Shown here piece after piece: positions 1-58,027 of a DNA stretch of 64,000 nt. The notes below the pieces were generated by a model that did no database searches, had not been told where the DNA came from, and saw only the letters and a list, made by a program, of their open reading frames with translations. Made by a program: the position numbers and the translations under genes. The DNA comes from Adineta vaga (Eukaryota; Animalia; Rotifera). Within the stretch, counting starts at the first letter, position 1. Each line of letters begins with the position of its first letter. The DNA is taken from positions 13,144,001 to 13,208,000 of the forward strand of contig CP075492.1 of assembly GCA_021613535.1 (NCBI GenBank), given 5' to 3'.

Positions 1-859
1 TCTCTATCTCCATGATCACATTCATAAGTGATCATACAGCTAAGAATCGATGGACATTGCTTTTGCGTCGTTTAATAAGTACAATATATAGCTTATAGCA
101 TCATTTAGCGTTCTTCTATGAAACAATAGTAACGTCTTTCGTTCTGTCATTGATTCTATGAAATATAATAAATAGAACAAAACATAGACAATCAATGAAT
201 GATGGGGCGACCATTGGTTCTTGGATCTCTATCCAACGGATGATTAGCAATACAACGGCATGGAAACAAATCTTGTGCAAAGTTGACAGACGTATTTATT
301 TCATGAAGAAGGCAGAACTAAATATATAGATCAGAATTGCAAAAGAGTGCTCTGACTATGAATCTTTCTCTCTTTTTTCTATTGAATTTCTAGTATTTGA
401 ATACTTGGATTTGAATTAAGTATGATTTATTCTGTGACTACTCATAATGATCGAAAAACGTTTGTTTTTGTTTGACAAAAACACTAAAATTCTTTCGTTC
501 TTATTATCGAAAATAAACTTCGATAACAAAAAAATGCAAAATGTGCACAACAATAGTAGCTTAAAGAAAGCGAACGATTGTTAAAAATAAGAATCATATT
601 TCAAAATTGTTCCACTCAACGACAGAGGACGCTTCCTTGATTAATCCAAATCTTTTCTTTTTTGAAGTTTTCTTTTTATTAAAACCGAATTCTTCTTATC
701 ATATGGATCTATAATTTTATTTATTTAATCATCATCAAATCTAGTAGTAGTCTGGCAGAGTTTCAAAGAAAAAAACAAAACAAACTTGATTTCGATTTGT
801 CAGCACAATCTTTTGTGATTGTCTGTCTATAATTTAGATTTGCACATATATTTTCCATA

Positions 860-2504
860 ATGCAGAGTAGACTTTCAAAAACACATAATTCTACAACTTC
901 ATTTTCCAATCAACCGAAAGATGCTCAACGATCCAAATTTCGATCAACAATTCTTCCTCCTATGTAAGTTCATTTTCATCATTGGAACTTTTAGTTTTCA
1001 TTCGAATATAATTTCGTTAAGAAATGATACAACATCTTCGATGGGAAATCTTATGTATGATCGTCGTATTGTTCGTGGAAATACCTACGCTGTGCATACA
1101 CTTCCAACAGTAGATTTTTTAAGACTTTCATTTCAATTATTTGTTTACTTTTTGAATAGTTACCTCCAATAAATTTAATTACAATTCAACGTCAACAAGA
1201 AGCACGTCGACGTGTTCAAGCAAGACGAAAAGCTCGACAATTCTTTCGAACAATAACACCTGAGCCTGTTTCTGATCGTAAACATATGAATGTTCAAACT
1301 GAACTTTATCTTGAAGAGCTCACGTGAGTTGTTGTTGTTGTTGTTGTTTTGTTTCAAAGTCATACATCTATAGACATGAGCGAATCTTACTCGGAAATTA
1401 TTTTGAGTTATTAGATGTCTATGTTATTTCTCTTGAGTACTTATTTAGTAACATTTAAATATAATTATGAACTTCATTTCCTTTAATTATATTAATGCTT
1501 TTTTTTAAAATATGATTTGATTATTATGTATTAAAAATAATTTTCAATTTTAGTGATCGAGTTGAAGAAGCAGATGTTTATATTCAAACAGATAGATTTC
1601 TTGATCGACCTTCAACACCATTATATATTCCACAATCTGTAGGTAGAGATACTGCGACACAAATTCAAATTGGTGATGTAAATATTGACATTTTTGTTTT
1701 CTCTTCAATTGATTTAATTGAATATCGTTACAGTTATTCTCTTTTGATGTGGACGTCAAACCTATTGCTGAAGTTCTCGTTGGTAGAACTACTGAACAAG
1801 CTTTAGTTGAGGTTGCTGAAGAAGAAGAAATCCGAAGAATTCATGATCAACAACGAGCTTTTGAAGAATTTCGTAATGCAGAATTAATTGAATTGCAACG
1901 TTTCGAAGAGCAAGAAAGACGTTTACGTGCTGAGAAAGATCGTCGTATACAACAAGCAGAAGAAGTATATCAATTAGAACGTGAAGTTCAAGAGAAAATT
2001 GCAGCACGAGCCTTTACACGAGCATATTTACAAGATCTTGTACCAAGTGTTTTCAATAATTTAAGAGAAAATGGATATTTCTATGATCCTGTTGAACATG
2101 GTCGAGATAATTTTCTTCTATTTCTTGTACCAAAAGAAATTTACTTTTATTTTTTTTAGAAACAGAAGCATCATTTATGCCATGGTTAATGGAACGAACG
2201 ATGACAGAAGTGAATCAATTAAACGTTAGTCGAACATTGTTAGACACTACCATTCGAGATGCTGTTAATCAACGTAAAGATCAATATCAACGATTGAATA
2301 ATTCATTTCATCAAGTAAGATGTTAAAATATCTTCAATAGATTTCGCATAATAAAAAGCAAATATTATTTCTTTACAGTCAAATAATCATAGTACTGTTG
2401 AACGACATACTCCACGAGGAAATAATAGTATTCATGGTTCGGAAAAAAACATCGAACGACAAGTATCAAATTCAAGTGATTTCAAAGGATCAAATACAGA
2501 GTAA
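860..2504 (+). CDS. RSPH3: Radial spoke head protein 3 (multi-exon)
   Basis: Spliced exons give GNLMYDRRIVRGNTYA, RKHMNVQTELYLEEL, FLDRPSTPLYIP and LFSFDVDVKPIAEVLVGRTTEQALVEVAEEEE...GYFYDPVE, all RSP3 hallmarks. GT-AG introns; stop TAA at 2502-2504. Confidence 0.93.
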
Positions 2505-2875
2505 TAGATTTCATGTTCTATTTATTAAATAAATTGATAATGGAAAATTTTATTTGACAATAAGTTTTCACTTTTCTTTCTCTTTTTTTCTCGAGATCAT
2601 TTTAAATTGATTAATGACTATGCGATTGTTCTATAATGAAAATATAGATCAAAGAGTATTCTATGCAAGAATGAATCTTTTCAAGCAATTCTATAGTAAT
2701 AGTTTTTATCAATGAAAAACAAAAGGAAATGATTGCCATTTAACTGCGCCCTCTTCGTTTCCGTGCGATTATTGGATGAATAGAAATCATGCGACTATGG
2801 CTCGCTGATGACATCTTTTCCCTTCCATTTCATAAATAAAAACATTGATTTATCTACGTGATAGTTTGACAAAAA

Positions 2876-3890
2876 ATGACAAGTAGAAATGAAAGAAATC
2901 CATCGGAAATAAATGTTCGAATGTCAATTCCATATTTAACAAATTTAATAGTTAGCTTGCCATTTGTTGGAATGGTTGCAAGTTTTATAACGTCAGTTCT
3001 ATTTACTAAAGAACAAATCTTCGAATCAGAATGTGGAGTAAGTTTGTTTTTTTTTAAAAAAAAGATATTCATTGGTTTGAAAGCCAAATTGTCTTGTTTT
3101 AGTCACGAAATTTTATTCCATCATTCTCATCAGTCATTGGTGTTTCACCCGGTAAATATATTTGGCGTATGGTAATAGCATTTCATTGTTTTCCACGATT
3201 TCTAATTGCATCACTTTATTACAATCAATTTAAAACAAGTCTATTGAAATTAAAATCGAATTCTGGAGGAAAATATTTCATTCTAAAACAATTAATACGA
3301 TTAAATACATTCTTTGAAATATGTGAAGTATTTGGTTTAATACTTTTATCATATATATCATCAAAAGAAAACTATGATGTACATGAAAAAGGCTTTATCA
3401 TCTTCATGTTATCATCAACTTTACGTATGATAACATGTTTAATTTTATTTCGACAATTATTATATAAATGTTGGTTAATTCATGAATATGATGATAAAAA
3501 TAAGAAATTTCGTTTTCAATCATCGTATCAATGGAAAATGCGTTTATTTTGTTCAGCATTTATATTTTCACTTCTATTAGTTGTTGCATATATAAGACAT
3601 ACTAGTAAATGTTCAAATAATATTGGTCAACCGTCAACAGCATGGAGTTATTTTTCAGCTTGTGAATATATAGTCTGTTGCTTAATTATGGGTTATCATG
3701 CAACAGTAAGTTTAGTTCTAATCGGTGCTTTTTTTTGTCTTGAAAGTTAACTAATTCATAGGTTTGTTGGGATTTCAATCATTTCGAATTGACAATTTAC
3801 AATAAAACAACAGCAAAATTAAATTACGAAGGAATTGAATCAGAACATAATATCAACAATGAACAAAAAGAGATTTATGTATCTCGATGA
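2876..3890 (+). CDS. PGAP2: Post-GPI attachment to proteins factor 2 (Frag1/DRAM/Sfk1 family) membrane protein, 3 exons
   Basis: Motifs ESECG|SRNFIPSFSSVIGVSPGKYIWRMVIAFHCFPRF, SSKENYDVHEKGFIIFM and WSYFSACEYIV...YHAT|VCWDF; several TM helices. Confidence 0.85.
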
Positions 3891-4833
3891 CATTTTACCT
3901 AACAAGATAAAAAAAAACTCCTTTCATCCATTTATGATGCCTCATTAATGCTTCCTTTTCATTTCAAATTGCGCTTTTTTTATGTGCATTATTTTTCTTT
4001 TTGGTTCCAGCTTTTGTGTAACTGGTTCTCAAACGCAAACTTACCTTATTTGATGATAGTATTTTGAGATAATAACAAAGAAAGAAAGAAAGAAGTAAAT
4101 CTTGGATGAATTGATTTGAAGATAAAACGATTTCTGATGGAAATTGAAGTAATTTTATTTATTTACTTGACATGTAATTCTATTGGTTTTAAAAAGTCAA
4201 TCATAATTCAATTATTACCCATTTTTATCGACATTGATGGGAAAGATCGACAATTGAAAGAGACTCGTCAATGATTTGATTAGAAGGAAAGAAAAACATC
4301 GATAAACAAATACTAACTAGTTTTCTTCATGATTAGAAGGAAAGAAAAGTTGAATCTTCCAAATACTTTCTATCAATAAAACCACAATTATGATGTTTTC
4401 ATCTCATGACATATATTATAAATAAATAATAGAAATTTCATACCAGTTACATTGTTTTTATCTTTTTCATATGAAATCATGTTTGTGTTTTATTTTATTT
4501 CAGATGTAATAAGAAATGTTATATTATAAATAGAATTAAGAATTCTCGTATTCATTGAGTTCGTTTAGTGTTTGTTTTTTTTTCTTATAATATTGAATGA
4601 ATAAGAAAGAGAAGAAAAGCATAAGATACACAGAACAACAATGTATGTACAACAAACAAAGAAGGAAAGCAATAAACAAAAAGAAGAGACAAAAATCACG
4701 GCGGTTCGCATTGTTTGTTTGTTTGTTTTTCTTTAAAATATGAACAGATCTTTTCAAAAGACGAGAAAAAAGAGAATTTTGTTCGATTAATATTCAGATG
4801 TAATGAGTAATTTCGATTTTTATTTTTTCTACA

Positions 4834-7800
4834 TTATGCTTCAGTATCTTCATGACCACTTTCATGACCTTTAAGGCGAATACGTGCAAATTCTTCGAAT
4901 ATAAAATCATCATCATGACCAGCATTGTCAAAACTAAACAAAACGAATCAATAAAAATTCTTTTTTCTATTTTAATAATTATCAACAAACTTTGTATCAA
5001 GTTGAATCAAATTATGATCAATAGGTATATCATTTGCTTGTTGATCATTAGGATTTTGTTGATTAGTAATAAATTCAAGTTGTCGAGATGGTGACGGAGT
5101 TGGTGGAGGTTTAGGATGTGTTAATGTAAAGGGTAATTCCACTGCTAGATCTCTTGAATAAAGAGAAAAATAAATGAAATAATCAAATACTTTCAAGTAT
5201 TATTTACCCTCCCATAGCTACAATTAATTTGATTTTAACTTTATATTGTACAATAATGCCGAGATTTTCCTTTTGTGTTGTACTTCGAATTCTATCATTA
5301 AATGATAGAAAAATTTTCTTATTTCCATTCGTTTTCAACATTAAACTTACATAGTTGAGGAAGCTAAATTCGTATCTTCATGTTTTAATTTACCATCTAA
5401 TGCTAAACCACGTTTATCTTTATTATTTGCCAAAAGTGGTGTTAAAGAATACACTTTCGTCAAAGTGGAACATGGAGTTATGGGAAATCCTTCACTAGAA
5501 AAGACAAAACAAATCACATATGTCATTTCCATAAATCCGTATATAGAAATTTTCTTAATGGAAGCAAAACAAAGCAAAGAATAAACAAAATGCATACTCA
5601 GTTTCCAATTCGGCGACAGTACATTTGTAATGAGCATTGGTAAACATACATATTTCAGCATATTGCTTAACTAGAATATATATTCAAAGCATACAACATT
5701 AAATAGCAACATTGATCAAAGCAACAAATAGAGACAAAAATAATAGAAGTGCCGAGCGAATTCCTATGAGAAAAAGAACACGTTTACCTACCTTGATTCA
5801 ATAGCAGCTACATCGCACTTATACTGTGTTGATGAGTACAAGCAGATTTCAGCATATTGAACAACTATAGATGGGTAATTAGGGATCGAGAGATAGTCAA
5901 AGTTCATTTTGAGAAGAAAGAAAAACATACGACGCGAGAAACGAAAACGATTTTTTCCTCTTATTCATTTCTATACTTACCAGATATACGAATTTTTCGT
6001 AAGGTTTTATTGGAATTATTTGTTACAACAACATTAACATTGATACTTTCACCATGATAATACATCTAAATGTATAATATTCATAGAAAATCTTTTTGTT
6101 TTTCAAGAAAAATTAAAATCTTCTACCTCTTTATCAAGTGTACATTCAAGATGTAACGGCGCAGGGGACATCATAAAATCTTTATGAGCTTCAATAACAG
6201 GTTGAGGAGCAGGAATTTCAGGTGCATAAGTTAATTTTCTTATTGCTAATCGAACTGAACTTCGTTTATGGGATTTATCTTCACTTGTTTCTGCGACATA
6301 AGTTTTCAATTCATAATCTACACCACATGGTTTGCCTGTATCACCAGCAGCTGGTTGTAATGTAACAGATGCAGGCGCTGTTTGTGCAATCTAAAACAGA
6401 TTGGTTGAATTTTCTTCTATCCTAATAGGAAATTAAAAAGCATCTACTTCGAAATAAAATGGATAAGCATTAGGTCCTAATTTTCTTAAAAGACGTTGTT
6501 GTAAATGTGTTAAAGGTTTCTTTTGATCATCAACAGGAGGATAGATTTGTTGAGTTGAACAAAATAAATCTTTTCGAAATGTTAAACCAAGAACATCGAG
6601 ATCTTCTCGACCATACCGAAATGCTATTTAAACAAAGAGAAAAAAAATAATATTATTCAAGTCTTTCCTTTCTCAAAACATACCTGCTAAGACAGATGCA
6701 TATACTTTACGATCTTTGACATATTCCGGATCGACTAGAACTACACCATCTTGAAACAAAAAAAAACACAAGTATTTTATCAAAAAATCTTTTTATCCAT
6801 AAGAATGTAAACATACCGATTGGATCGATATGATCCGAATAATCGATAAAATCTCGTTTTCCAAGGTAACATGTTATCTAAGCAAAAAAAAAGAAGTCAA
6901 TTAGATATTCAATGAAACATATATCCGTTTTTATATCCATACTTTCGAATTGGGACTACTTTTTTTGAACACTCTAAAAACAAGAAAAGAACAATAATAG
7001 ATAAAGCATTGTTTAACTTGATCTAACAAAGATTAACAGAAATTATTTGTCTACTTATTGTCAGTGATGAGAGACAGAAGTCCTCCAAATATAATACGCT
7101 TTATTTTATCCATCCATCAATCAATCAATCAATCTATCTAAACGCATCAATTGAAAAGACATTGCTAACAGAAGTCAAGAGTCATTTTCTCTTGACTAGA
7201 TAGATGATGGCAATCAAGGAATCAAGCAAGAGAAAACTTCGTCGCATTTTTTCCGGATGAATAATAGATAATGTTTTTGTTTCAGTTAGAAATTATCTTT
7301 CTCGTGCATTTTATCAGAAAATGAGACATCTTCGTTTGAACTTCCGTTACATGAGCAACTTAAAGTTAACAGAAATGTTTCGAATTACTTTCTACATGAA
7401 GAAAGAAAGAAGCATTAAATATATACATATATATATATATAGAGAGAGAGAGAGAAAGCACAAAATTTTTTATTATAAAACGGATGTACACACCCTTAAG
7501 ATTTTACATGGTTAGTATTTATTTCATGTGCAAATGAAAAAAAAAACCCTTTTTCTCCTCATTGAAAGGATTAATGAAAACGATATGATCACATGAAATT
7601 TAAAATGACAAAAACATGACCTTCTATGTATGATGTAAAACTAATCGATTTCTTTCTTCTACTTGAAATATCGATAGACAATAGTTGAAGGTAATTATAA
7701 TCAATTTACTGATAAGTTAGAAAAAAAGAAAACAACAGATTATATATTTATACTTACGGTTTCATAAGATATTAGATGATGATGATATAATCATTGTTAA

Positions 7801-8402
7801 ACATGATTGAATGAAACAAGATCAAATGCATCGAACGACTAACAATCAAATGCGCACTTTCCACTTATTCTTCCTCTTTCTTACATATATATATAGTCAC
7901 TAGGATAATGCATCGATGTCCTCTTTATCGTTATTTCTCATATCAACTTGACGCTATTCTCATTCTTCTGCTTTTTTTTATGATTCTCTCGAACGCTCGG
8001 GTTTTTCTTTCTGTTCTTCGAACATTTTCTTTCAAGGCTATTTTACTAGACGAGATATGGAAAAGAATAACGTTGTAAGCAAAAACAGTCATGGTACCGG
8101 AAGGAACGTTTCTCCGAAAGAAGAGAAAGAATAGGACTGCTGCTCATACTATCATTTTTGTAATTAAAATGCCTGAAAGCAAACATAAAACTAATCAATT
8201 ATTTTCTATTTAAATTAATAGATCAGTTTACAATGTTTTCTTTTCTTTTCTTTTCTTTTCTTCAATAAAAAAAATCAATTGATTGTTCTCGTTTACTGAA
8301 AAGGAAATTTTCAACAAACATTAAATACCTTGTTCCTTGTTTTTTCGAATCATCTAAACTTAAATCAAGAGCACCATTGCCATTTGTTTGCTGTTGTGCC
8401 AT
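4834..8402 (-). CDS. ARRB: Beta-arrestin (kurtz-like), multi-exon with alternative exons
   Basis: [10 protein letters not shown]|[57 protein letters not shown], clathrin box LIQLD and AP2 motif [16 protein letters not shown]. Confidence 0.96.
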
Positions 8403-8965
8403 ATTTCATAGAAATCTTGTTCATAGAAAATACATAATTAGGCTTCTATATATACAATCTAAATATATGAAAGAAAACACAAAAAATTCGATTTTAATTG
8501 AATAAATATCGTTTCTCAGTTTTTTTTTTCGGGCTTGTCAATCAAATAAACAAAGAGAAATATTCTTTTGATATAAATCTGATCAAATTTTCATTGATTA
8601 AGTATATAAATAGAAACGCATTTGTGATTATATGAAAGGAAAAGAAAAACAGATAGATTTGTAGCACAAAGAAAATCAGCAAGCAAAGCAATGACATTCT
8701 ACTTTTATCTCATTTGTTTATTTATTCGCCATCAACGACAAACATTAACTCTCATTGTATTATTGTTAGCGATATGTACATCAGTAACTAGCGCCATCTA
8801 TCGAATAATGAAATCTAACTCTGTTATCTTATAAATCAGATTTCTAACACGTAATGAAACGTGTTTTCATCCTTGTCTTTTATATTATCATTACAATACA
8901 ACCATTAATGTCATTTTATTAAAAGAAGGAAGACAGACAGACAGATAGAGAGAGTAAAAAGAAGA

Positions 8966-11618
8966 TTAACATCCCAGTGAACCAATACGAAATTGTTTCA
9001 TTGTCATTGCTTCAATATCACCAGAAGTTAATAGAATTTGTTGACCTGTATAATTACTTTGTGCAGCATTTGAATGTTTATTACCTGCTGATTGTCTCAT
9101 CGATGCTCGATGTTGATGTTCTTCTAACGCATGTTTATTTGTTAAAATCTTATGAGTTTTATCCAAAGGATTCGATCGATTTGTTTCATCCGATGCAACT
9201 GATAAACGTTGAAGATTTTTTCCTGATGGAATTGTTTTACGCACAACTGTTGTCGCTGCTGAACCAACATAATCATCGGATTCATCACCAGCATGATGAC
9301 CAAATGAATTCAAACGTTCCATACGAGTTTTCTTGTAAAAGAAAAATAAAACAACACATTGATTTGATTTTCCTGATTGTTAGGCATTTGTTCATGCGAC
9401 ACATGCTCATATGCTTTTATGTTTAGTTCGATACAACGTGCTTTTAGCTAGCATAAAGAGGTTATTTTGCATGTCTTATCTTAGAACTTTGAACTGTATC
9501 AGATATGGTCTAGAAATCAGTTTTCTGTGTGATATAACTCTTGATAATATTTTATTGTAAATTATTTCACCTCAAATATTTAACTTACCGAATATTCTTT
9601 ATCTTTACGTTTCATTATTCGTCGTCGTCGATAAATCTAATAGAAGAACATATTTGTTTTATCATTTGCAAGTTTTCTACTTACAACAAAATACATCCAA
9701 AGAAAAAATATGACATGAAATAATGTATAAATTACACCTAAAGTTATTAATGCTACATTATCCCAATGTTGTGCAACATCTGTTGGACAAACAGCAATAA
9801 TCGCATGCCAAACACAGACTACACATAACATGACCATTGATAGAAGAACATATTTATCCTAGAGAAAATATTCGACTAAAATTGATATCTTAATCAAATA
9901 ATCAATTTTTACTAATGTTGTTAAATATGAAATAGTTGGAAGACATCGAACAACCACCCATTTGAAAGTAACGGCTGTTAATAGAAGTGTAAAACTTAAT
10001 TGGAGACGATTTTGTGGAAGATTATATGTAACACTAAATGTGGCAAATGCCATTACTGTTATGAAAAACTAAATAATGAATAGATTTTGTATTGAAAATA
10101 CAATGTTGATAAAGGACGACGTACGATTAGAAAATAAACATTCCAATAGAAATAACCGGGTCGACGTGCCGCATGACCTAAACGTAGAAAATTTGCAGAC
10201 ATTTATACATTGAAGAATTGATTTACAAGTTGCTGAAAAAGCTGGATGTTGATTTTGTGATGGTGTAAATGGACTGGATAATAATTTCGTTGATGTTTCA
10301 ACATGTTCATGTAAACGCCATTCTTGTTGATCAATAAATGCATCTGTAAAGAAAACGGAGATTTTTCAATATAAATTTCATTCTTCTCCTACGTGTATTA
10401 ATAGCACTCAATTGATGAGTATCTGCAGTAAGTAAAACTTCATTCACTGTTCTTGTTGTCGATACTGTAATTGATAGATCCTTTTGAAAGAAAGAAAAAA
10501 ATATGACTTATTTTCAAGAGAAGATGATTTACTTGAACATCGACAGGAAAATCATTCAATTCAAGATTTTCTAAAAAGACTCCTTTTACTTTTCTCATTT
10601 CATATATCATCGGTGTATCAATTCCATCATAAACAACTTTATGCCAAACATCATTTTTAATATCTCCAACTGAATTATCAATAAATAATAATGGATTCCA
10701 AAATTTATTCGCATCAAAACAATCAATATCCTTATTGAACAAAGAATTTTTCATAGAAATGAAATCAACAAATTTCCCTTTTACTTACGGTTCCTTTCAA
10801 AGTTGGTTCATACCAACGTGCTTGAATAAATGCTTCAGCTTGAAATTGTTCTTTTAATGTATCAATTTCACCAAGTTTTAAAAAAACTAATCGTAATTCA
10901 ACCGTAACCTAAAAATATTCTCCATCAAACAATTTGTCAAATTAAACTAGACACGTGCAATTCTAGTCAATCTATTTTTCTTCATCAATAATGTACTCAT
11001 AATAAAATAGGTTCCGATGATGTATACATAGTTGTTTTATTTACATTATTATCATAGTAAAGGGTATTCATCGATCATTAAGATACAATTTCTTCCTTAT
11101 CTCCGATCTTTATAGTACATTCCCTAGTGAAACTGTAATAATATCAATATGATACTCATTCTCTAATCGTATTTATATAGTCTCTCCTGTTTGTCTAGTC
11201 AAGTATCTTGAAACTAAATGTATTTTCATCGAAAATTTTTAATACATACTCTTTCCAATTTATGTACGCCAGAATTATCATCAGCTGGTCGTGTTTCTTG
11301 TTTTTCATAAACTTTAACAAGATTATCTTTAATTTCTCCTAAAAGTTTAACATTTTTCTTAAAATGAGTATTTAATTCTTGGAGTGTTGTTGTTAATTCA
11401 CGTAGATCAGCTGCTGATGTTGACAGTGATGATTGAGCACTTTGACATCGTTTAGCGGATAAATATTGATGTGTTGAATTCGATGATGGTATCGTATAAT
11501 TTGTTCCTGAACAACCTGCAGATACATTTACCGATGGTGATACACCACGGGTAGTACGCTGGTGACTTGATGATGACGACAGTTTGGTAAATAGATTTGA
11601 TCTACAAGGAACGTTCAT
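8966..11618 (-). CDS. Pentameric ligand-gated ion channel subunit, Cys-less (Pro-loop) type
   Basis: ECD motifs GEIDTLKEQFQAEAFIQARW, FWNPLLFIDN and FLENLELNDFPVDVQDL (no Cys pair). ARRPGYFYWN precedes M1; M2 is RLQLSFTLLLTAVTF; LPTISYLTTLDKY precedes M3; four TM helices. Confidence 0.88.
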
Positions 11619-13632
11619 TGTTTTTCAATAGTAGAGATACTTAATCTTCTTGTCATTGGTTTGATGATGATCAAAAAAAAAGAAGTGATGTTAACGAAGC
11701 AGATCTATATTTGATAAGAATAATTTCATGCAATAGATTTTGTAACTTACTCCTAAACTCATTTTGTACGAAAAGATCGATTAGCAAAATCGAATTAAAA
11801 AGAAAATCAATAATAATGATTATTTGTCGGATATATTGCATATTTATTCTCATCTTTATTTTTCTAGAGGAAATCTTTTCTTGTATCTACGAGTCAATAG
11901 CCTTGTTGATGAAGAGATGAAAGAGCTTGTATATGTGAGGAGACGAAGACGAAGAAGAAGAAGAAGAAAAAACGAGTAGACTTTCTATCTAAGATATTGC
12001 TGTATACATAATACTAACAACAAGCAAATACATCGATCATGAAAGAAACATGCCAACAGAAAGTTACATAGTTTGATGAGAAAGGAAAGAGAGTCGAATT
12101 TCTGATTAACATAATCTTTTGACAGATATTTAAAGATGTTCATTTATCACTCAAGAAAAAGAACTTTCTATAAATATCGAGGTTTCATCGACTTCTGTCT
12201 GTCTAAAAGAGAAAGAGAGAGAGAGATAGAGAAACAAACAACATCCACTTAAGATATTTGCATTTTACTTTCTTTTATATGTTCCATATGATCATTTGAT
12301 CCTATATTTTGGCGTGAAAAAAATGCAGATTCTCCTATTAGAACAACAAATATGCAGTTTTTTTTCTCGACCTTCGCTAACTGATGAGAGAATCACTGAA
12401 TAAGAGAACAAGATTTGATATACACACATATATATAGACTAAAATATTATCAATCAATCAACACGAATAAAAGTTTCTGATACTTGTTGATAGAAATAAA
12501 CAAAATTTCGAACACATATTCTTCTTTATTTCTTATTTCTTTTCCAGAATACGTCATTGAAACCTACGCAATTAGTTTTTCTCTATATTGACTAGAAAGA
12601 AACCAAGTGGTACTTACATGATGATGATGATGATGATGAGACGATTAAGATTGTTGTTTCTATTAGAAGACTAAGGTCATCATTATTACTAACAGTTGAT
12701 CTTATGATGGTCGACAAATAGACAAACGATCAGCTGTCATTAGCTATATGGCAGATATGTATTGACAAATAATCGAGATTTTTGTGTCAAAAACTTCTTT
12801 TCATGACGATATAAAAAAATCGTTATTCGTTTACTTATTAAATACTCACGAAAGTACGAAATTTATCGTATGATATATTATCATTTTGTTTCTATCAGTA
12901 TATTTTATCGTACGATACAGTGGTATAGATGTCTATTTCAGTTGTCTTCCGAGAATTTCTACTGATCTTTTCTCAAATGATCTACATAGTCTTTTTGACA
13001 AATTTTAAAAACTAGAAAATAATTTTGCAGTTATTTTATCTTAATCGTACATAGAGAGAAGTTAACTGGAATGTTTTTATACTATGATCGGTACAGATCG
13101 AATTTATACAGTATCTAATAATATTCCCATAGGTATAGAAGCTGGAATAATATTTGTTGATAATCGACCTAGTTTTATAATATTTCAATTAATGTTGCAT
13201 AAATCTTCTTTTTCTTCTTTTTATTAAAATGAAATTCGTTTTTTCGAATCAATTGATAATATTCTTCTTTAGAGAATTTTCGTTCAAAACTAATAGCCGA
13301 TAATGGACAATTGTATGTTTATATTAGTTTAATCTAATCAAGATAATTCTTAGTTATAATCGTTGAAACTAAAATGACATTATTTTTGAAGTGTAACGTT
13401 CTTTCTCGACTAGATCGAAATGACAAATAATGACTAAAATCATCGTCTATTGTCGACGATTATGTCTTTCCTTTAAATCCCTCGATGATTGTCAAGAAGA
13501 AAGAAAAGAATCTAATATATATATATATAATACACTTACGAAAGAATCGAAATGATAAAGTAATATAATCTTATGTGATATCACTCTCTCTCTCTCTTTG
13601 TCAGCTATCTCTAGGTACATCAGCAGATGAAC

Positions 13633-51862: not shown

Positions 51863-53311
51863 CTATAAATGATGAGCACGAGGAAAATGTTTAGATGCTT
51901 TTATATAAGCTTGATTGACATTATCGAAAGTAGCTATGAATGGATTGTCAGAGTTTGCATGATTATTCATTTCTAGGATAAGTTCAATCATGAAATAATG
52001 AAGTTCTCTTGGATTTGAAATTCGATCAATAACTTCGGCGACTTGTTTATCTTTATAATTTGTTAATGTGTCGAAACCTTTCAATGTTTTACAACGAACA
52101 TTTGATGAAGTTTTATTCATTTTTTCGAGCACATGATCAGCATAGTTCATTAATGATTTTGTATCCCATTGAATCGTAAGTGTTGGAAATTTGTCCTTCC
52201 TAACAATTTCATTTTGAAATTGAATATCATCTATTTGAGGATAGAATAGTGATAGATAAAAATTTTGAGCCATGACTGATGCGAGAATTTCTGGACAAAC
52301 TGAAGAACGAAAGAATAAGCTTATTGATTCTTTGTTGACCACTCCCTTGCGAAAAAAATAACGATTTTCATCAATTCCATCAATAGCAAATACCACAGAT
52401 TTTTTTAGATGATTTTTAATAAATAACGCAAAATGTGTTAAATCTTTGAATATTGTGTCAATCAAATGGTTTTCATGCGCTTGATTTTGAAATTCTTCTT
52501 TTTCCGTAATAGTAAAAAGTAGACGAAGTCTTAAATCATCTGATTTTTTCAATACAATTAATTTATTCAGATCGGTTCTGAAATGTTCGAAAAGAATCTT
52601 GTATTCAAATTTATTTTTTTCATACGTTTGTACTTGAGCAGCTTTTGCACTGTATCGTTGATAGGCACCTTTTTCAAAAAAATAATTTGCAAAATTTTCT
52701 AACTTGTTTATATCATCTCCATTATAATAATAACAAATGATACTTATGAGTTTCATCTTTTCTTCTAACGATACATCCGAAACATGAAACTGTTCCTTTT
52801 CATATTCGTTCACCAGTTGTGTCACCAACATAGATAACAGGACTTGACCAAACTCATATTTTCTCCAGCCAACCAAACAGTTCGAACTTTCACAGTTCAC
52901 ACCGTCAACCGATGTTGCACTCACATATCTTTCCAGATAGTCATTTAGATGTTGGTTTAAGATGAGTACTTTGAAATATTGAGTGGGTGATAATGATTTG
53001 AAATATTCACATCGTAATAGTGTTTTACCGGTACCAAATTTTGATAGGATTAGAAATGAAGTTGCGGAATGATCTTGTTTGAGAACTGCTTGTGGAAGAA
53101 CAGAATTGATGATGATTTGTGAATCGCAAGCATCAGCAGTTGTGATAGTAAAATGGTTTCTTGAGTTTTCGATGCCATAATATTTGTGAAAATCTCTGTT
53201 TGAAGCTATCGACATTTTACATTCAGTGAGAGTGGAAACTGCATTAAAATAATAGGCATAATAAGCTATCAATAGCACCAGGAGTGATATACAACCAAAG
53301 ATTTCGAGCAT
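51863..53311 (-). CDS. Intronless membrane-anchored P-loop NTPase (STAND/AAA+-like), paralog A
   Basis: 482-aa ORF; N-terminal TM; Walker A-like FLILSKFGTGKT; Walker B VVFAIDGIDE; LTIQW..KSL; NPREL. Confidence 0.85.
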   Translation of the reverse strand: MLEIFGCISLLVLLIAYYAYYFNAVSTLTECKMSIASNRDFHKYYGIENSRNHFTITTADACDSQIIINSVLPQAVLKQDHSATSFLILSKFGTGKTLLRCEYFKSLSPTQYFKVLILNQHLNDYLERYVSATSVDGVNCESSNCLVGWRKYEFGQVLLSMLVTQLVNEYEKEQFHVSDVSLEEKMKLISIICYYYNGDDINKLENFANYFFEKGAYQRYSAKAAQVQTYEKNKFEYKILFEHFRTDLNKLIVLKKSDDLRLRLLFTITEKEEFQNQAHENHLIDTIFKDLTHFALFIKNHLKKSVVFAIDGIDENRYFFRKGVVNKESISLFFRSSVCPEILASVMAQNFYLSLFYPQIDDIQFQNEIVRKDKFPTLTIQWDTKSLMNYADHVLEKMNKTSSNVRCKTLKGFDTLTNYKDKQVAEVIDRISNPRELHYFMIELILEMNNHANSDNPFIATFDNVNQAYIKASKHFPRAHHL

Positions 53312-55055
53312 AATTTTGGTCTGAATTAATGGTGAGTATATATGCCGATATTATACTACGAACAGATACTGATTTCTTATATCTAGAATACGATTGAAAT
53401 TATATGGTTTCTTGTTAAATTCTACACGAGATGTAAAGTAGGATCAATATGAATGTAGTGGGATAAGAAAGAACAATAGACAGAAAAAAAAACATATCTA
53501 CGTTTCTGATACTTATTTAATCGTGCTTACAGATATAGATGTAAATTGCTGACTATTCATTCTAATTACGATCAAATCAAGTTACATATATGAAGATTAA
53601 AGCATTGTTAATACTTTGAACTAGTCTCCTTATGAATACTAATTTATGTACGATTTCTATTGCTCCTTCTTCTATACATTAGATAAATCCCTCTTGCATA
53701 GGTTGAAAAATTCATTATATTGTGTTTACCTTATCTTAAAAATAGATATCACTGGGTTTTTTTCTATGTGTAAGCGGTGTTCTTTGTCCATGTTTGTTGT
53801 ATTTTTCGCTATTTCGATTTACTACATACGACTCGTTCTTTTCTAAAATACAATGTTGATAACGCTATTTACTCAGATAAATGTGTACTATAACTCATTT
53901 TTGCATTGTAGTTTTTTGTTTACTGTTATTCATTGGATAAATAAAAATATTTTTGTGAATAACAAAAAGGTAATTTATATACAATGTATTTTTACTAGGA
54001 TGCTGTCTACTTGAATTAACGAATGCTTTCGATATAGACTTCAGTAAAATATGCAATGCAGGATTTATCTTAGAAACACATTTGATAACAGAGATATCTT
54101 CTCTGTATGATTATATTCTTTTTGAAATAAGATATTTTTTTATCTGTGTTTTACTTAACTATAACACATTATTATTTCATTAGATTCAATACTTCAGAAG
54201 TGATAATATTGTTTTAATTCAAATACTTAGTAGTGTAAGTTTATCACAAGAAAACGAACGTACAATATAAAACGATGCCAGATACAGAGAAAGATATGGC
54301 TGGCCAATCCACTTCTACCGACGATTCATCTATCGACACTAGCTCCCAACTGTTATTGACAGAGGCAGCAGTCGAAGCAAACACCCCTTCTCAAACGGAC
54401 GGAACAGCAACTGGAAGGAATATTATTGAAAAGATAAAAACAATTCTACAGGCTGTGCCTACAATTCTGGTAGCTCTTTTCATCTATAAAGTTCTTTCTT
54501 CTTATTCGAAACAATCTTATTTCAATCCCTGTAATATGACGATAGCTTCAAACAGAGATTTTCACAAATATTATGGCATCGAAAACTCAAGAAATCATTT
54601 CACTATCACAACTGCTGATGATTGCGATTCACAAATCATCATCAATTCTGTTCTTCCACAAGCAGTTCTCAAACAAGATCATTCCGCAACTTCATTTCTA
54701 ATCCTATCCAAATTTGGTACTGGTAAAACACTATTACGATGTGAATATTTCAAATCATTATCACCCACTCAATATTTCAAAGTACTCATCTTAAACCAAC
54801 ATCTAAATGACTATCTAGAAAGATATGTGAGTGCAACATCGGTTGACGGTGTGAACTGTGAAAGTTCGAACTGTTTGGTTGGCTGGAGAAAATATGAGTT
54901 TGGTCAAGTCCTGTTATCTATGTTGGTGACACAACTGGTGAACGAATATGAAAAGGAACAGTTTCATGTTTCGGATGTATCGTTAGAAGAAAAGATGAAA
55001 CTCATAAGTATCATTTGTTATTATTATAATGGAGATGATATAAACAAGTTAGAAA
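52696..55055. repeat. Inverted repeat, 516-bp arms (52696-53211 / 54540-55055) with a 1328-bp spacer
   Basis: Manual comparison: 6 mismatches in 516 bp, no indels. Confidence 0.95.
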
Positions 55056-55903
55056 GATTCGTTAATTATTTTCTGGAAAAACCATCTTCTTCGCAGTACA
55101 AAGCAAGTACTACTGTCACTCAATTTATTCAGCGAAATGTTTACTATGATAAATTACTACTTGCTCATTTCAAAAAAGATTTAAACAAATTTCGTGTCTT
55201 AAATAAAAATAATAGAAAGCTTGAACTATTATTAGGGATCGTAGAAGGTGAAAAATTTGAAAGTCAAGCAGCAAAAACAACTATGGTGGAAAACATATTT
55301 GAAGATCTTGTACAACTCACAGTATTCGTAAGAGATCATGTGAAAAAATCTGTGGTATTTGTAATCGATGGAATCGATGAAAGTCCATATCTTTTACACA
55401 AGAGTATCGATGGTAAGATATTATTAGAATTGTTTATGCGATCCTCAGTCTGTCAAGAAATTCTGTCATTAATGATGACTCAGAACTTTTATTTATCATT
55501 ATTCTATCCTCAAATAGATGATATTCAATTTCAAAATGATATTGTTAGGAAGGACAAATTTCCAACACTTACAATTCAATGGGATACAAAATCGTTGATG
55601 AATTATGCAGATTATGTCATAGAGGAAATGAATAGGAATATTTTAAGAAATCGTTGTCAATTAATACCAGATTTCGAAACACTTGTGAGTTATACAAACC
55701 CACAGATAGCTGATATTATTAATGAATTTCAAACGCCAAGAGAACTCCATCAATTTATTCGGAAATTGATCGTAGAAATGAATAATTGTGCAAAAGATAA
55801 TGATAAACCGTTTATAGCCACATTTGATAATGTTAACAATGCTTATATTAAAGCAAAGGAAGTTTTCAAGAAATATCCTACTCTTGACAAAGCTGAGAAA
55901 TAA
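54275..55903 (+). CDS. Intronless membrane-anchored P-loop NTPase (STAND/AAA+-like), paralog B
   Basis: 542-aa ORF; S/T-rich N-tail then TM; FLILSKFGTGKT; VVFVIDGIDE; LTIQW..KSL; TPREL. Confidence 0.85.
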   Translation: MPDTEKDMAGQSTSTDDSSIDTSSQLLLTEAAVEANTPSQTDGTATGRNIIEKIKTILQAVPTILVALFIYKVLSSYSKQSYFNPCNMTIASNRDFHKYYGIENSRNHFTITTADDCDSQIIINSVLPQAVLKQDHSATSFLILSKFGTGKTLLRCEYFKSLSPTQYFKVLILNQHLNDYLERYVSATSVDGVNCESSNCLVGWRKYEFGQVLLSMLVTQLVNEYEKEQFHVSDVSLEEKMKLISIICYYYNGDDINKLERFVNYFLEKPSSSQYKASTTVTQFIQRNVYYDKLLLAHFKKDLNKFRVLNKNNRKLELLLGIVEGEKFESQAAKTTMVENIFEDLVQLTVFVRDHVKKSVVFVIDGIDESPYLLHKSIDGKILLELFMRSSVCQEILSLMMTQNFYLSLFYPQIDDIQFQNDIVRKDKFPTLTIQWDTKSLMNYADYVIEEMNRNILRNRCQLIPDFETLVSYTNPQIADIINEFQTPRELHQFIRKLIVEMNNCAKDNDKPFIATFDNVNNAYIKAKEVFKKYPTLDKAEK

Positions 55904-57091: not shown

Positions 57092-58027
57092 TTAATTATA
57101 GATTATATGTAGAATGCTAAAAGAAAGAAGTATGATACTGGAAAAATGTTCAAGTAAAGATGATGCATGATTTGTTGTTGTTGTCGTTGTTGTTACATCA
57201 GTCGTGGAAATAGTTGTTGGTTTTAACGTCGTTGTTTCAGTTGGCCATGGTGGTGTCGTAGCATTGATGACTGATGTATTAATTGGTATAATATAATCAC
57301 GTTCTAACATCTGAAACGTGTTCAATGCAGTGATATTTTTGCCACAGTTTTCAGTATTACAATAATAAATACCAAATTGAGTTAAACCATATTTAACACC
57401 ATCTGGTTCATACAATTGAATCCAATGAACATGGGGAAAATCGTCTGAATCCAATTTCTGACATCCGCCATTAACATGAATATTACCACTTCTACTCCAA
57501 TGAATATAACTAATAAAACACAATGATGTGTTTTGCGGACAAATATCGTCATTTTGACATTGAATCGGTCCAGTATTGTTTGGATGGTAGAGATTAGTAG
57601 CAAGTGTTTGACGAAATGATTCTACATCTAACATTGCCAATGATGGTGATAATGTTTCACGTACAAATTCAAGATCACAAAAGTCGGATACTGAACAATT
57701 GTAATTGACATCGAGTTTTACTGAAATTTCATTTAATAAAAATTTTGTATCAATGACGAGTCTATTTTCAGTCATAATTGCTCGAGGTTCAGCATCGAAT
57801 GATCCGTTGATCAAACCTGTACTAAAGTCAATTGTTAATTGAACCATACATTGTTGATTGATATCATCATTTATTTGTGTTGATGGACAAATATCAATTG
57901 GAAATGACGAATTTAAAGGTACTCCTTCAAAGGTACATTTCTTCAAACATCGACTTGAATCAATAAGTTGTATTACTATTGTAAAGACAAAAATGATCCA
58001 GAAGGATCGATGTATAACACGTGTCAT
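57092..58027 (-). CDS. Intronless secreted Cys-rich (LU-like) protein with Thr-rich stalk and probable GPI signal
   Basis: Signal peptide; C-x3-DFC and YCNTENCG motifs; TTTLKPTTISTTDVTTTTTTT; hydrophobic C-terminus with no cytosolic tail. Confidence 0.8.
   Translation of the reverse strand: MTRVIHRSFWIIFVFTIVIQLIDSSRCLKKCTFEGVPLNSSFPIDICPSTQINDDINQQCMVQLTIDFSTGLINGSFDAEPRAIMTENRLVIDTKFLLNEISVKLDVNYNCSVSDFCDLEFVRETLSPSLAMLDVESFRQTLATNLYHPNNTGPIQCQNDDICPQNTSLCFISYIHWSRSGNIHVNGGCQKLDSDDFPHVHWIQLYEPDGVKYGLTQFGIYYCNTENCGKNITALNTFQMLERDYIIPINTSVINATTPPWPTETTTLKPTTISTTDVTTTTTTTNHASSLLEHFSSIILLSFSILHIIYN

Follow-up and report, generated by a model that had tools for sequence, protein, structure and literature searches.

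Two long intronless open reading frames lie head to head in a 64-kb stretch of Adineta vaga DNA (the window), and they raise the question of what kind of protein pair they encode, on which side of a membrane it would work, and how it came to be in a bdelloid rotifer. Both genes belong to an undescribed family of AAA+ P-loop NTPases. With moderate confidence, we read them as a signal-anchored extracytoplasmic paralog pair descended from a bacterial gene that would have entered eukaryotes together with its export signal.

The coordinates (Table 1) confirm the head-to-head arrangement across a spacer of about 960 bp that was given in a preliminary description of this DNA, and both frames begin with ATG and translate with zero internal stops. 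They are by far the longest ORFs of the window, where only seven reach 200 aa or more, and the BTB-Kelch gene beside the pair has many exons; thus, these are indeed intronless long genes amid intron-rich ones. The two genes are a genuine paralog pair in host DNA: their proteins are 68% identical, and the BTB-Kelch neighbor is syntenic with Adineta ricciae. GC content is host-like, the locus lies some 13 Mb along a chromosome-scale contig of 20 Mb, and collinearity with A. ricciae extends as far as the adjacent BTB-Kelch gene. The long paralog is the positional ortholog of A. ricciae P0003, and the syntenic site in that species holds a single copy. Pairing is therefore not obligatory, which we count against our reading. 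We rejected a 311-aa ORF beside the pair as a candidate conserved partner: its homologues are all bdelloid, and neither the A. ricciae nor the A. steineri locus has it. The 311-aa gene also occurs at the equivalent position beside a distant homologue, P0071.

Table 1. Features of the divergent NTPase gene pair; nucleotide positions are those of the window.
Feature	Position	Strand	Description
Short paralog	51863..53311	-	482 aa, intronless; signal-anchor at extreme N-terminus, followed by AAA+ NTPase domain
Signal-anchor, short paralog	53225..53311	-	hydrophobic; aa 1-29
Walker A SKFGTGKT, short paralog	53021..53044	-	aa 90-97
Walker B strand VVFAIDGIDE, short paralog	52367..52396	-	aa 306-315
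Gene-conversion tract, short-gene arm	52670..53221	-	552 nt; 97% identical to other arm
Divergent spacer	53312..54274		963 bp, AT-rich; presumed promoters; outside repeated/converted DNA
Long paralog	54275..55903	+	542 aa, intronless; ~53-aa acidic disordered N-tail, one TM helix, AAA+ NTPase domain
TM helix (signal-anchor), long paralog	54434..54496	+	aa 54-74
Gene-conversion tract, long-gene arm	54530..55081	+	
YYGI..NHF, long paralog			from aa 99
Walker A SKFGTGKT, long paralog	54707..54730	+	aa 145-152
NCESSNC, long paralog			aa 194-200
Helical insert, long paralog	54839..55348	+	family-specific, ~170 aa; follows beta2/alpha2 and precedes Walker B
Walker B strand VVFVIDGIDE, long paralog	55352..55381	+	aa 360-369
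IQWDTKSL, long paralog			aa 434-441
PREL, long paralog	55736..55747	+	aa 488-491; starts a lid helix; candidate sensor-2 arginine

The inverted arms share a gene-conversion tract that takes in Walker A together with the juxtamembrane motif and the first part of the insert. Within it dS is 0.07, against about 1.0 outside, and it is only because of this tract that the two paralogs appear as sisters in the tree. The pair does not stem from a recent duplication, since the C-terminal half gives a polytomy with dS of ~1; these are old paralogs. Omega outside the tract is 0.35, and values of 0.14-0.22 in conserved blocks indicate purifying selection. We suggest that recurrent gene conversion would hold the N-terminal half (juxtamembrane motif, P-loop, first insert helices) identical in both proteins. 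The same measurements bear on whether there is a working system here at all. If the ORFs were a decaying relic of horizontal transfer, an assembly contaminant or chance frames, the lack of any match to a known domain would be readily understood; however, both ORFs are intact under an omega of 0.14-0.35, the family is kept, its catalytic motifs invariant, in three bdelloid genera, base composition is host-like deep within a chromosome-scale contig, and the neighboring gene is syntenic in A. ricciae. We regard this explanation as highly improbable and already largely refuted.

All of the motifs listed in the preliminary description are present in the translations, and a single hydrophobic N-terminal helix is found in each protein, in agreement with the one TM segment assigned to it. 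The motifs are not chance occurrences: rotifer, other eukaryote-like and bacterial members alike keep the glycines and lysine of Walker A, D365 and D368 of Walker B, W436 and P488 with little or no variation. The proline of PREL is invariant and its arginine, the candidate sensor-2 residue, nearly so in every clade. The Walker A sequence, which does begin with serine, had been called a variant, but this is not unusual, as the family has A, G or S at that position; standard Walker A sequences have A or G there. About 215 residues separate Walker A from Walker B because of the helical insert, which carries the C195/C200 cysteine pair and an invariant ICYYYN motif. Folded alone (pLDDT 88.8), the insert has no recognisable fold, with a best Z of 4.3 among solved structures.

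The AlphaFold (AF2) model of the long paralog (pLDDT 79.5, pTM 0.76) consists of an AAA+ core plus lid, in which strand 141-145 precedes GTGKT and helix 151-161, strand 359-365 ends at D365, and lid helices occupy residues 438-531. Model and alignment together give the P-loop, the Walker B on an internal strand and the C-terminal helical lid of an AAA+/ASCE protein. The predicted domain order is a tail (or none), the TM helix, a conserved juxtamembrane cysteine and F..YYGI motif, an ORC/Cdc6-like core interrupted by the insert, and the helical lid. Nearly all of the top 50 structural matches (VIA-align) are AAA+ or STAND-type P-loop NTPases. The best are ORC/Cdc6 proteins (7jgr_G, Z 12.7 with 243 residues aligned; 5uj7_C, 12.0; 1w5s, 11.4), and further matches include the archaeal Walker ATPases PAB2304 (2qen) and SSO1545 (2fna), TnsC and BrxC, the last with the longest alignments (318-327 residues, Z about 10). 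Foldseek against the PDB returned just weak p97/HslU rows (E at least 2e-3, TM about 0.2). The predicted fold most resembles that of ORC/Cdc6-type AAA+ proteins and their prokaryotic STAND-like kin, as had been proposed from the motif order. The likeness to ORC/Cdc6 and the archaeal Walker ATPases extends over core and lid (Z 10.5-12.7, 220-258 residues aligned), with the Walker A and B strands and a lid helix bearing a conserved P-R in the expected places. In contrast to those proteins, to which identity is 10-13%, the rotifer family has no winged-helix DNA-binding domain (the model has no strands past residue 433, and the chain closes with lid helices), and it adds the 170-aa insert and an N-terminal export signal or anchor.

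At the level of sequence families, Pfam, NCBIfam and PADLOC gave nothing significant for the rotifer proteins, neither protein matched Pfam ORC-CDC6-like or Cdc6 at E<=1, and searches of the PDB by sequence, with a single protein or a profile, found nothing. Language-model neighbors are labelled BrxC_BrxD, AAA_22 or KAP, and structural matches in the Atlas are bacterial clusters labelled KAP, Sll1717 and ORC-CDC6-like (TM 0.56-0.70). KAP NTPases are likewise membrane-associated, are patchily spread over bacteria and animals and have an insert that separates Walker A from Walker B, but their TM helices lie within the NTPase domain; here Pfam KAP_NTPase gave no match, the insert is without a hydrophobic segment and the sole TM helix is N-terminal. 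BrxC/BrxD of BREX, Sll1717 and gene 1 of DS-41 (anti-phage; DefensePredictor, PMC13092281) are P-loop proteins of prokaryotes that are ORC/Cdc6-like and also carry large inserts; none of the BREX or DS-41 partner genes is present, however, and the rotifer/bacterial family has export signals. The bacterial members introduced below match NF053860 (DS41_1) and NF047389 (Sll1717) at E 3e-7 to 3e-4 and 20-30 bits, against cut-offs of 370 and 75, and the rotifer proteins match neither model; on this evidence the relation is a distant kinship at most. A literature search on Sll1717, and on bdelloid horizontal transfer of ATPases, returned nothing specific.

On which side of the membrane does the ATPase domain lie? 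Judged from sequence features, it seems to face away from the cytoplasm, a reading that rests on long N-tails, flank charges and a perfectly coupled cysteine pair. Tails of 40-200 aa (longer than 40 aa in each case) precede the TM helix in 19 of 59 members, and the N-terminal flank is the more positive in 35 members, against 15. C195 and C200 are both present in 28 sequences, both absent in 8 and never found singly, and this is the only clearly coupled cysteine pair. The N-termini of bacterial members resemble signal peptides, one with a lipobox (LLGC). A lumen-facing NTPase had been suggested from shared cysteines and N-glycosylation sequons; of these the cysteines hold up, joined now by the tails and flank charges, but the sequons are weakly conserved in the family. 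Two further points count against an extracytoplasmic domain: the flanks of the short paralog are charge-neutral, with no positive charge ahead of the helix, and an intact P-loop in the ATP-free bacterial periplasm is hard to explain.

The latter points would be accommodated by a membrane-tethered STAND-like sensor pair facing the cytosol, where ATP is plentiful, with the helix acting only as a tether in the manner of Msp1/ATAD1 and the pair serving as an NLR-like sensor/helper or conflict module. Paired NLRs and other STAND NTPases share the hhhhDGhDE Walker B and the adjacency of paralogs; plant NLRs, Dark, AVAST5 and RADAR RdrA are among the structural matches (Z 8.4-9.5); there are weak NPHP3_N, NACHT and AAA_16 matches; and the bacterial kin, on mobile islands, are weakly similar to the validated anti-phage DS41_1 (PMC13092281). 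Yet every STAND match in Pfam falls below its gathering score, including NPHP3_N (E 0.0086, 16.7 bits against a cut-off of 24.8, Walker B region only) and NACHT in a bacterial partner protein (E 0.007), and NLRs rank below ORC/Cdc6 in structure (Z about 9; NB-ARC domains 8.8-9.5). The family has no winged-helix/HD module, and no sensor repeats or effector domain, as the chain ends ~50 aa past the lid and the N-terminus is a disordered tail plus TM helix. The proposed STAND/NLR affinity is thus retained for the general fold, near prokaryotic STAND-like kin, and not for the NLR architecture. The long tails, the cleavable signal-peptide-like or lipobox N-termini of the bacterial members and the coupled cysteines also oppose a cytosolic placement, and we consider it somewhat unlikely. 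In the extracytoplasmic reading that we prefer, the signal-anchor would put the rotifer NTPase domain in the ER/Golgi lumen or at the cell surface in type II topology, and the bacterial domain would be periplasmic or secreted. The function that we infer for the pair is that of a hetero-oligomer whose nucleotide sites would drive a conformational switch.

A profile search of 1.84 billion representative proteins found only 136 relatives. Every match that carries an organism name is bdelloid (Adineta, Rotaria, Didymodactylos), a group in which the family is widespread, so the best matches are not ordinary metazoan proteins, and some further matches sit on eukaryote-like metagenomic contigs. The bacterial relatives that had been predicted do exist, as a clade of nine proteins on mobile-element contigs, which aligns with the rotifer clade over 420 columns (hhalign, 99.7% probability, E 8e-26). 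Their gene context includes IS66, integrases, RdgC, PRiA4 and IS240 next to a dcw cluster. One contig looks Coxiellaceae/Legionellales-like, its RdgC gene being closest to Coxiellaceae, Legionellales and other Gammaproteobacteria MAGs, and the carriers are probably host-associated. A pattern scan of about 185,000 species genomes found no bacterial members, nor did five MAGs picked through the RdgC neighbor and then 86 genomes of the Coxiellaceae-like order, or the viral contigs scanned; a word search with the bacterial profile gave three matches only. Adjacent paralog pairs recur: 498+523 aa (31% identical; L006), 515+518 aa (63% identical; L008) and 494+458 aa (on the contig of P0141) in bacteria, a three-copy rotifer cluster (L003) that includes a head-to-head pair, and a tandem pair in A. 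steineri. In a midpoint-rooted tree with no outgroup, bacterial and eukaryote-like sequences each form a clade of their own (96 for both).

Three marks of horizontal acquisition from bacteria are found here: bacterial homologues, integration into host DNA and, among matches with organism names, absence from other animals. The preliminary description had the anchor and the duplication added after that transfer. This order is contradicted by the bacterial homologues, in which export signals (Sec signal peptides or a lipobox) and adjacent paralog pairs are both found already; anchor and pairing thus probably predate the transfer. Most likely, a bacterial operon-type gene passed to a eukaryotic lineage before the bdelloid radiation, and it would have arrived with its export signal and already in use as a paralog pair.

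The opposite history, in which a native eukaryotic secretory-pathway family was later captured by intracellular Legionellales/Coxiellaceae-like bacteria, draws on observations that we count against our own reading. Eukaryote-like sequences far outnumber bacterial ones (~127 of the 136 matches lie outside the bacterial clade, all those with organism names being bdelloid), the nine bacterial members are rare and reside on mobile elements, signal-anchor and cysteines are an architecture typical of eukaryotic secretory proteins, and uptake of host genes is known from Legionellales-type bacteria. Against it stand the absence of introns from every eukaryotic copy seen, the patchy eukaryotic distribution with no named metazoan beyond bdelloids, the purely prokaryotic identity of the nearest outside families (by language-model, Atlas and profile comparisons), and the fact that the bacterial clade alone keeps detectable similarity to prokaryotic families, in its weak DS41_1/Sll1717 matches (E down to 3e-7). 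We judge capture from a eukaryote unlikely, and continue with transfer from bacteria.

AAA+ and STAND-type NTPases are generally viewed as cytosolic or nuclear machines. It has been stated that, torsins apart, no AAA+ protein is known from the ER lumen and perinuclear space (PMC7140721). The torsins offer an analogy of location only: both groups are membrane-associated AAA+ proteins outside the cytosol (here by prediction), both have conserved cysteines, and both probably work with a partner that is a paralog or AAA-like, but they share no sequence similarity, no torsin appears among PDB sequence matches or the top 50 structural matches, and the torsin Walker A is non-canonical whereas that of this family is canonical. 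It is conceivable, though we put it forward with some doubt, that the family is a second, independent extracytoplasmic AAA+ family after the torsins, a heteromeric pair exchanged between host-associated bacteria and micro-eukaryotes that could form a conflict or surface-surveillance module.

If our reading is correct, the combination of conserved Walker motifs, export signals in bacteria and eukaryotes, a novel insert and recurring paralog pairs raises the question of what job a nucleotide switch performs outside the cytoplasm. A further gain would be a clear-cut example of a family common only to bdelloids, a few other micro-eukaryotes and the mobile islands of probably host-associated bacteria. 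Bdelloids have long been regarded as ancient asexuals, and this locus shows concerted evolution in the form of patchy gene conversion between inverted paralogs.

The two divergent genes, separated by 963 bp, are the two longest ORFs of the 64-kb window, where only seven ORFs reach at least 200 aa, and both are intronless as the preliminary description had it. Numerous short exons make up the neighbouring BTB-Kelch gene, consistent with the earlier view that long genes in this region are otherwise intron-rich. The two proteins are 68% identical, and the GC content of their genes (~30-31%) equals that of the remainder of the window. Both proteins contain just one hydrophobic helix, located N-terminally or close to that end, which matches the single TM segment originally proposed, and translation recovered every motif that had been listed: SKFGTGKT, VVF[VA]IDGIDE, IQWDTKSL, PREL, YYGI..NHF and NCESSNC. 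In the genome examined (100.8 Mb in 6 contigs, with the window at ~13.1-13.2 Mb of contig C3) these are the only two family members, and distant members used as queries found no further copies.

Coordinates of the paired genes, their surroundings and the related loci
Sequence	Feature	Coordinates	Strand	Description
Window	Short gene	51863-53311	-	intronless ORF, 482 aa
Window	Long gene	54275-55903	+	intronless ORF, 542 aa
Window	Inverted repeat	52670-53221 and 54530-55081		552 nt, 97% identical
Window	Third ORF	57092-58027	-	intronless, 311 aa
Window	Block collinear with L034	39906-51630		GOST_TM, FA_hydroxylase, BTB-Kelch
Window	Block inverted relative to L034	1038-8762		Arrestin-Frag1-RSP3
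L003	Three family copies	1982-8374	-, +, -	bdelloid-like metagenomic contig, 11 kb
L004	Three tandem copies of a 78-nt unit	13036-13269		A. steineri; degenerate
L006	Four-gene block	355-5950		bacterial contig
L007	Four-gene block	5977-11572		bacterial contig
L008	Gene upstream of the bacterial pair	1124-2590		SEC-C motif and DUF7986

The third ORF encodes a protein with a signal peptide, many cysteines, several N-x-S/T sequons, a Thr-rich stalk and a hydrophobic, GPI-anchor-like C-terminal tail. It has no Pfam match, its homologues are confined to bdelloids (Rotaria, plus a paralog in A. vaga), and its position beside the NTPase genes is not conserved in A. ricciae or A. steineri.

The history of the pair differs between its two halves. 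The dS value is 0.07 within the inverted repeat vs about 1.0 outside it. In a tree of whole proteins the two genes are sisters (98*), but in a tree of the C-terminal half this relationship dissolves into a polytomy, the short and long genes being as distant from each other as from their homologues in A. ricciae, A. steineri or Rotaria. For this reason the duplication is taken to be old, with the N-terminal half homogenised later by gene conversion. Outside the tract the overall omega is 0.35, with 0.14 in a second conserved block, and both genes are under purifying selection.

Clustering of these genes recurs in other rotifers. The three copies on L003 include a head-to-head short/long pair, and A. 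steineri has a tandem pair. Identity among the L003 copies is mosaic (72-90% by block), which suggests gene conversion there too. In A. steineri the degenerate repeat lies directly upstream of the second tandem copy, its third unit extending into the start of the called ORF (13215), and the two promoter regions have in common stretches of ~100 nt at 72-78% identity. Synteny of the pair in related genomes holds in part: the site beside the BTB-Kelch gene is kept in A. ricciae (L034), but there it contains a single copy, which by position is orthologous to the long gene of A. vaga. Collinearity with L034 runs up to the NTPase gene and breaks at the pair, the block downstream in A. ricciae lying elsewhere in the window in inverted orientation.

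Every named homologue is a bdelloid protein (A. ricciae, A. steineri, several Rotaria, Didymodactylos) rather than a widespread metazoan one. A profile of 37 sequences recovered only 136 relatives among 1.84 billion representative proteins (E<=1e-3), and a tree of full-length members resolves four kinds of sequence. The well-supported bdelloid core clade (45 sequences) comprises several sub-clades in each of which Adineta, Rotaria and Didymodactylos all occur, so diversification of the family predates the separation of these genera. Three looser groups are metagenomic, at least some of them on eukaryotic contigs: individual members lie beside split protein-kinase fragments (P0071), UMP1, Pam16 and GPN on a contig of 57% GC (P0079), or TMEM43 (P0064). 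Nine proteins form a bacterial clade, whose homology to the rotifer proteins is firm as judged by profile alignment (hhalign probability 99.7%, E 8e-26, 420 columns that begin at the juxtamembrane motif and extend to the C-terminus).

Pfam, NCBIfam, PADLOC and PDB sequence searches with the rotifer proteins returned nothing significant, the sole trace being a below-threshold NPHP3_N match across Walker B. In an AlphaFold2 model of good quality from 37 homologues (pLDDT 79.5, pTM 0.76; long-protein numbering), the chain begins with a disordered N-terminal tail and the TM helix (aa 50-78). The strand and helix of the P-loop come next, then a long helical region, the strand bearing Walker B (aa 359-365), a further pair of core strands and, last, a helical lid. 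Foldseek with this model gave only weak AAA+ rows. In an exhaustive VIA-align search the best matches were ORC/Cdc6 proteins (7jgr_G, Z 12.7; 5uj7_C, 12.0; 1w5s_A, 11.4), followed by the archaeal Walker ATPases 2qen and 2fna, TnsC, MuB and BrxC; NLRs and Apaf-1-like proteins ranked lower, at Z about 9. BrxC scored only about 10, yet gave the longest alignments (318-327 residues). Because Z declines gradually down the ranking, membership in AAA+ is secure on the predicted model but placement within the ORC/Cdc6-STAND neighbourhood only probable. The rotifer proteins lack a winged helix as well as any repeat or effector domain. The proposed resemblance to ORC/Cdc6-like ATPases is supported at the level of the predicted fold, membership of the STAND or NLR group is not supported, and the reported absence of an animal NLR effector or LRR domain is borne out. 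The 170-aa insert that separates alpha2 from Walker B (aa 189-358) folded confidently when modelled alone (pLDDT 88.8) and matched no solved structure (best Z 4.3). The best full-length structural neighbours in the ESM Atlas are bacterial clusters (TM 0.56-0.70), namely Planctomycetota hypotheticals, 'KAP'-labelled clusters and Sll1717 or ORC-CDC6-like clusters, and language-model neighbours are of the same kinds. We consider it very likely that the pair are AAA+ NTPases of a new family.

Among 59 family members surveyed for topology, the distance from the hydrophobic helix to the conserved F..YYGI motif downstream is 20-25 residues throughout, and 19 carry a hydrophilic tail of 40-200 aa ahead of the helix. 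In 35 cases vs 15 the N-flank carries more positive charge than the C-flank, most strongly in bacteria, and short signal peptides that look cleavable occur in some eukaryote-like members. C195 and C200 of the NCESSNC loop are perfectly coupled (both in 28 sequences, neither in 8 from three separate clades, never singly), and a different set of cysteines, particular to that group, is conserved in the bacterial clade. Helix placement, tails, flank charge, signal peptides and coupled cysteines together lead us to favour an N-in/C-out orientation, type II in rotifers and periplasmic or secreted in bacteria. Caveats are the charge-neutral flanks of the short A. vaga protein, the lack of clear coupling in other cysteine pairs, and the weak conservation of the sequons cited in the earlier hint at a lumen-facing domain. 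The bacterial periplasm, moreover, offers no obvious nucleotide supply for a P-loop. On balance, we lean towards an extracytoplasmic NTPase domain. [quoted passage not shown]

Bacterial members of the family are rare: none was found when about 185,000 species genomes were scanned by pattern, nor among 86 genomes of the Coxiellaceae-like order. Their contexts have a GC of 32-35% and include an IS66 transposase, NRPS and PAS kinase (L006, L007), integrases, RdgC and PRiA4 (L008), and a dcw cell-division cluster followed by IS240 fragments (the P0141 contig). The nearest matches to the L008 RdgC gene come from MAGs of Coxiellaceae, Legionellales and other Gammaproteobacteria. The same block of an IS66-type transposase, a 103-aa ORF, a 498/492-aa paralog and a 523-aa paralog recurs in the two differing contexts of L006 and L007, which suggests that the pair travels with the insertion sequence. 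The gene upstream of the L008 pair gave weak PADLOC matches to E1-E2, E2 and PDC-S12 models, and this island may hold defence genes. The bacterial clade alone shows weak similarity to the NCBIfam families DS41_1 (an anti-phage protein; NF053860, DS-41 gene 1) and Sll1717 (NF047389), with E down to 3e-7 but scores far below the cut-offs; DS-41 is a defence system validated in the DefensePredictor study (PMC13092281).

The preliminary description regarded the membrane anchor and the pairing as additions made after transfer. However, the bacterial genes already occur as adjacent same-strand paralogs (498+523 aa, 31% identity; 515+518 aa, 63% identity; 494+458 aa on the P0141 contig) with signal-peptide-like N-termini (a K/R n-region, a hydrophobic core and an AXA-like site; lipobox LLGC in one member). 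Anchor and pairing are therefore traits of the family, probably not later additions in rotifers. The genes were more probably acquired from bacteria than donated to them. The only pointers to a conflict or immune role are the mobile-island context and the distant kinship with DS-41 and BrxC, and we regard such a role as unlikely. In the ORC/Cdc6/RFC neighbourhood heteromeric assembly is the norm and, since pairing is found in three bacterial loci as well as in rotifers, we tentatively suggest that the two paralogs may act as a hetero-oligomer.
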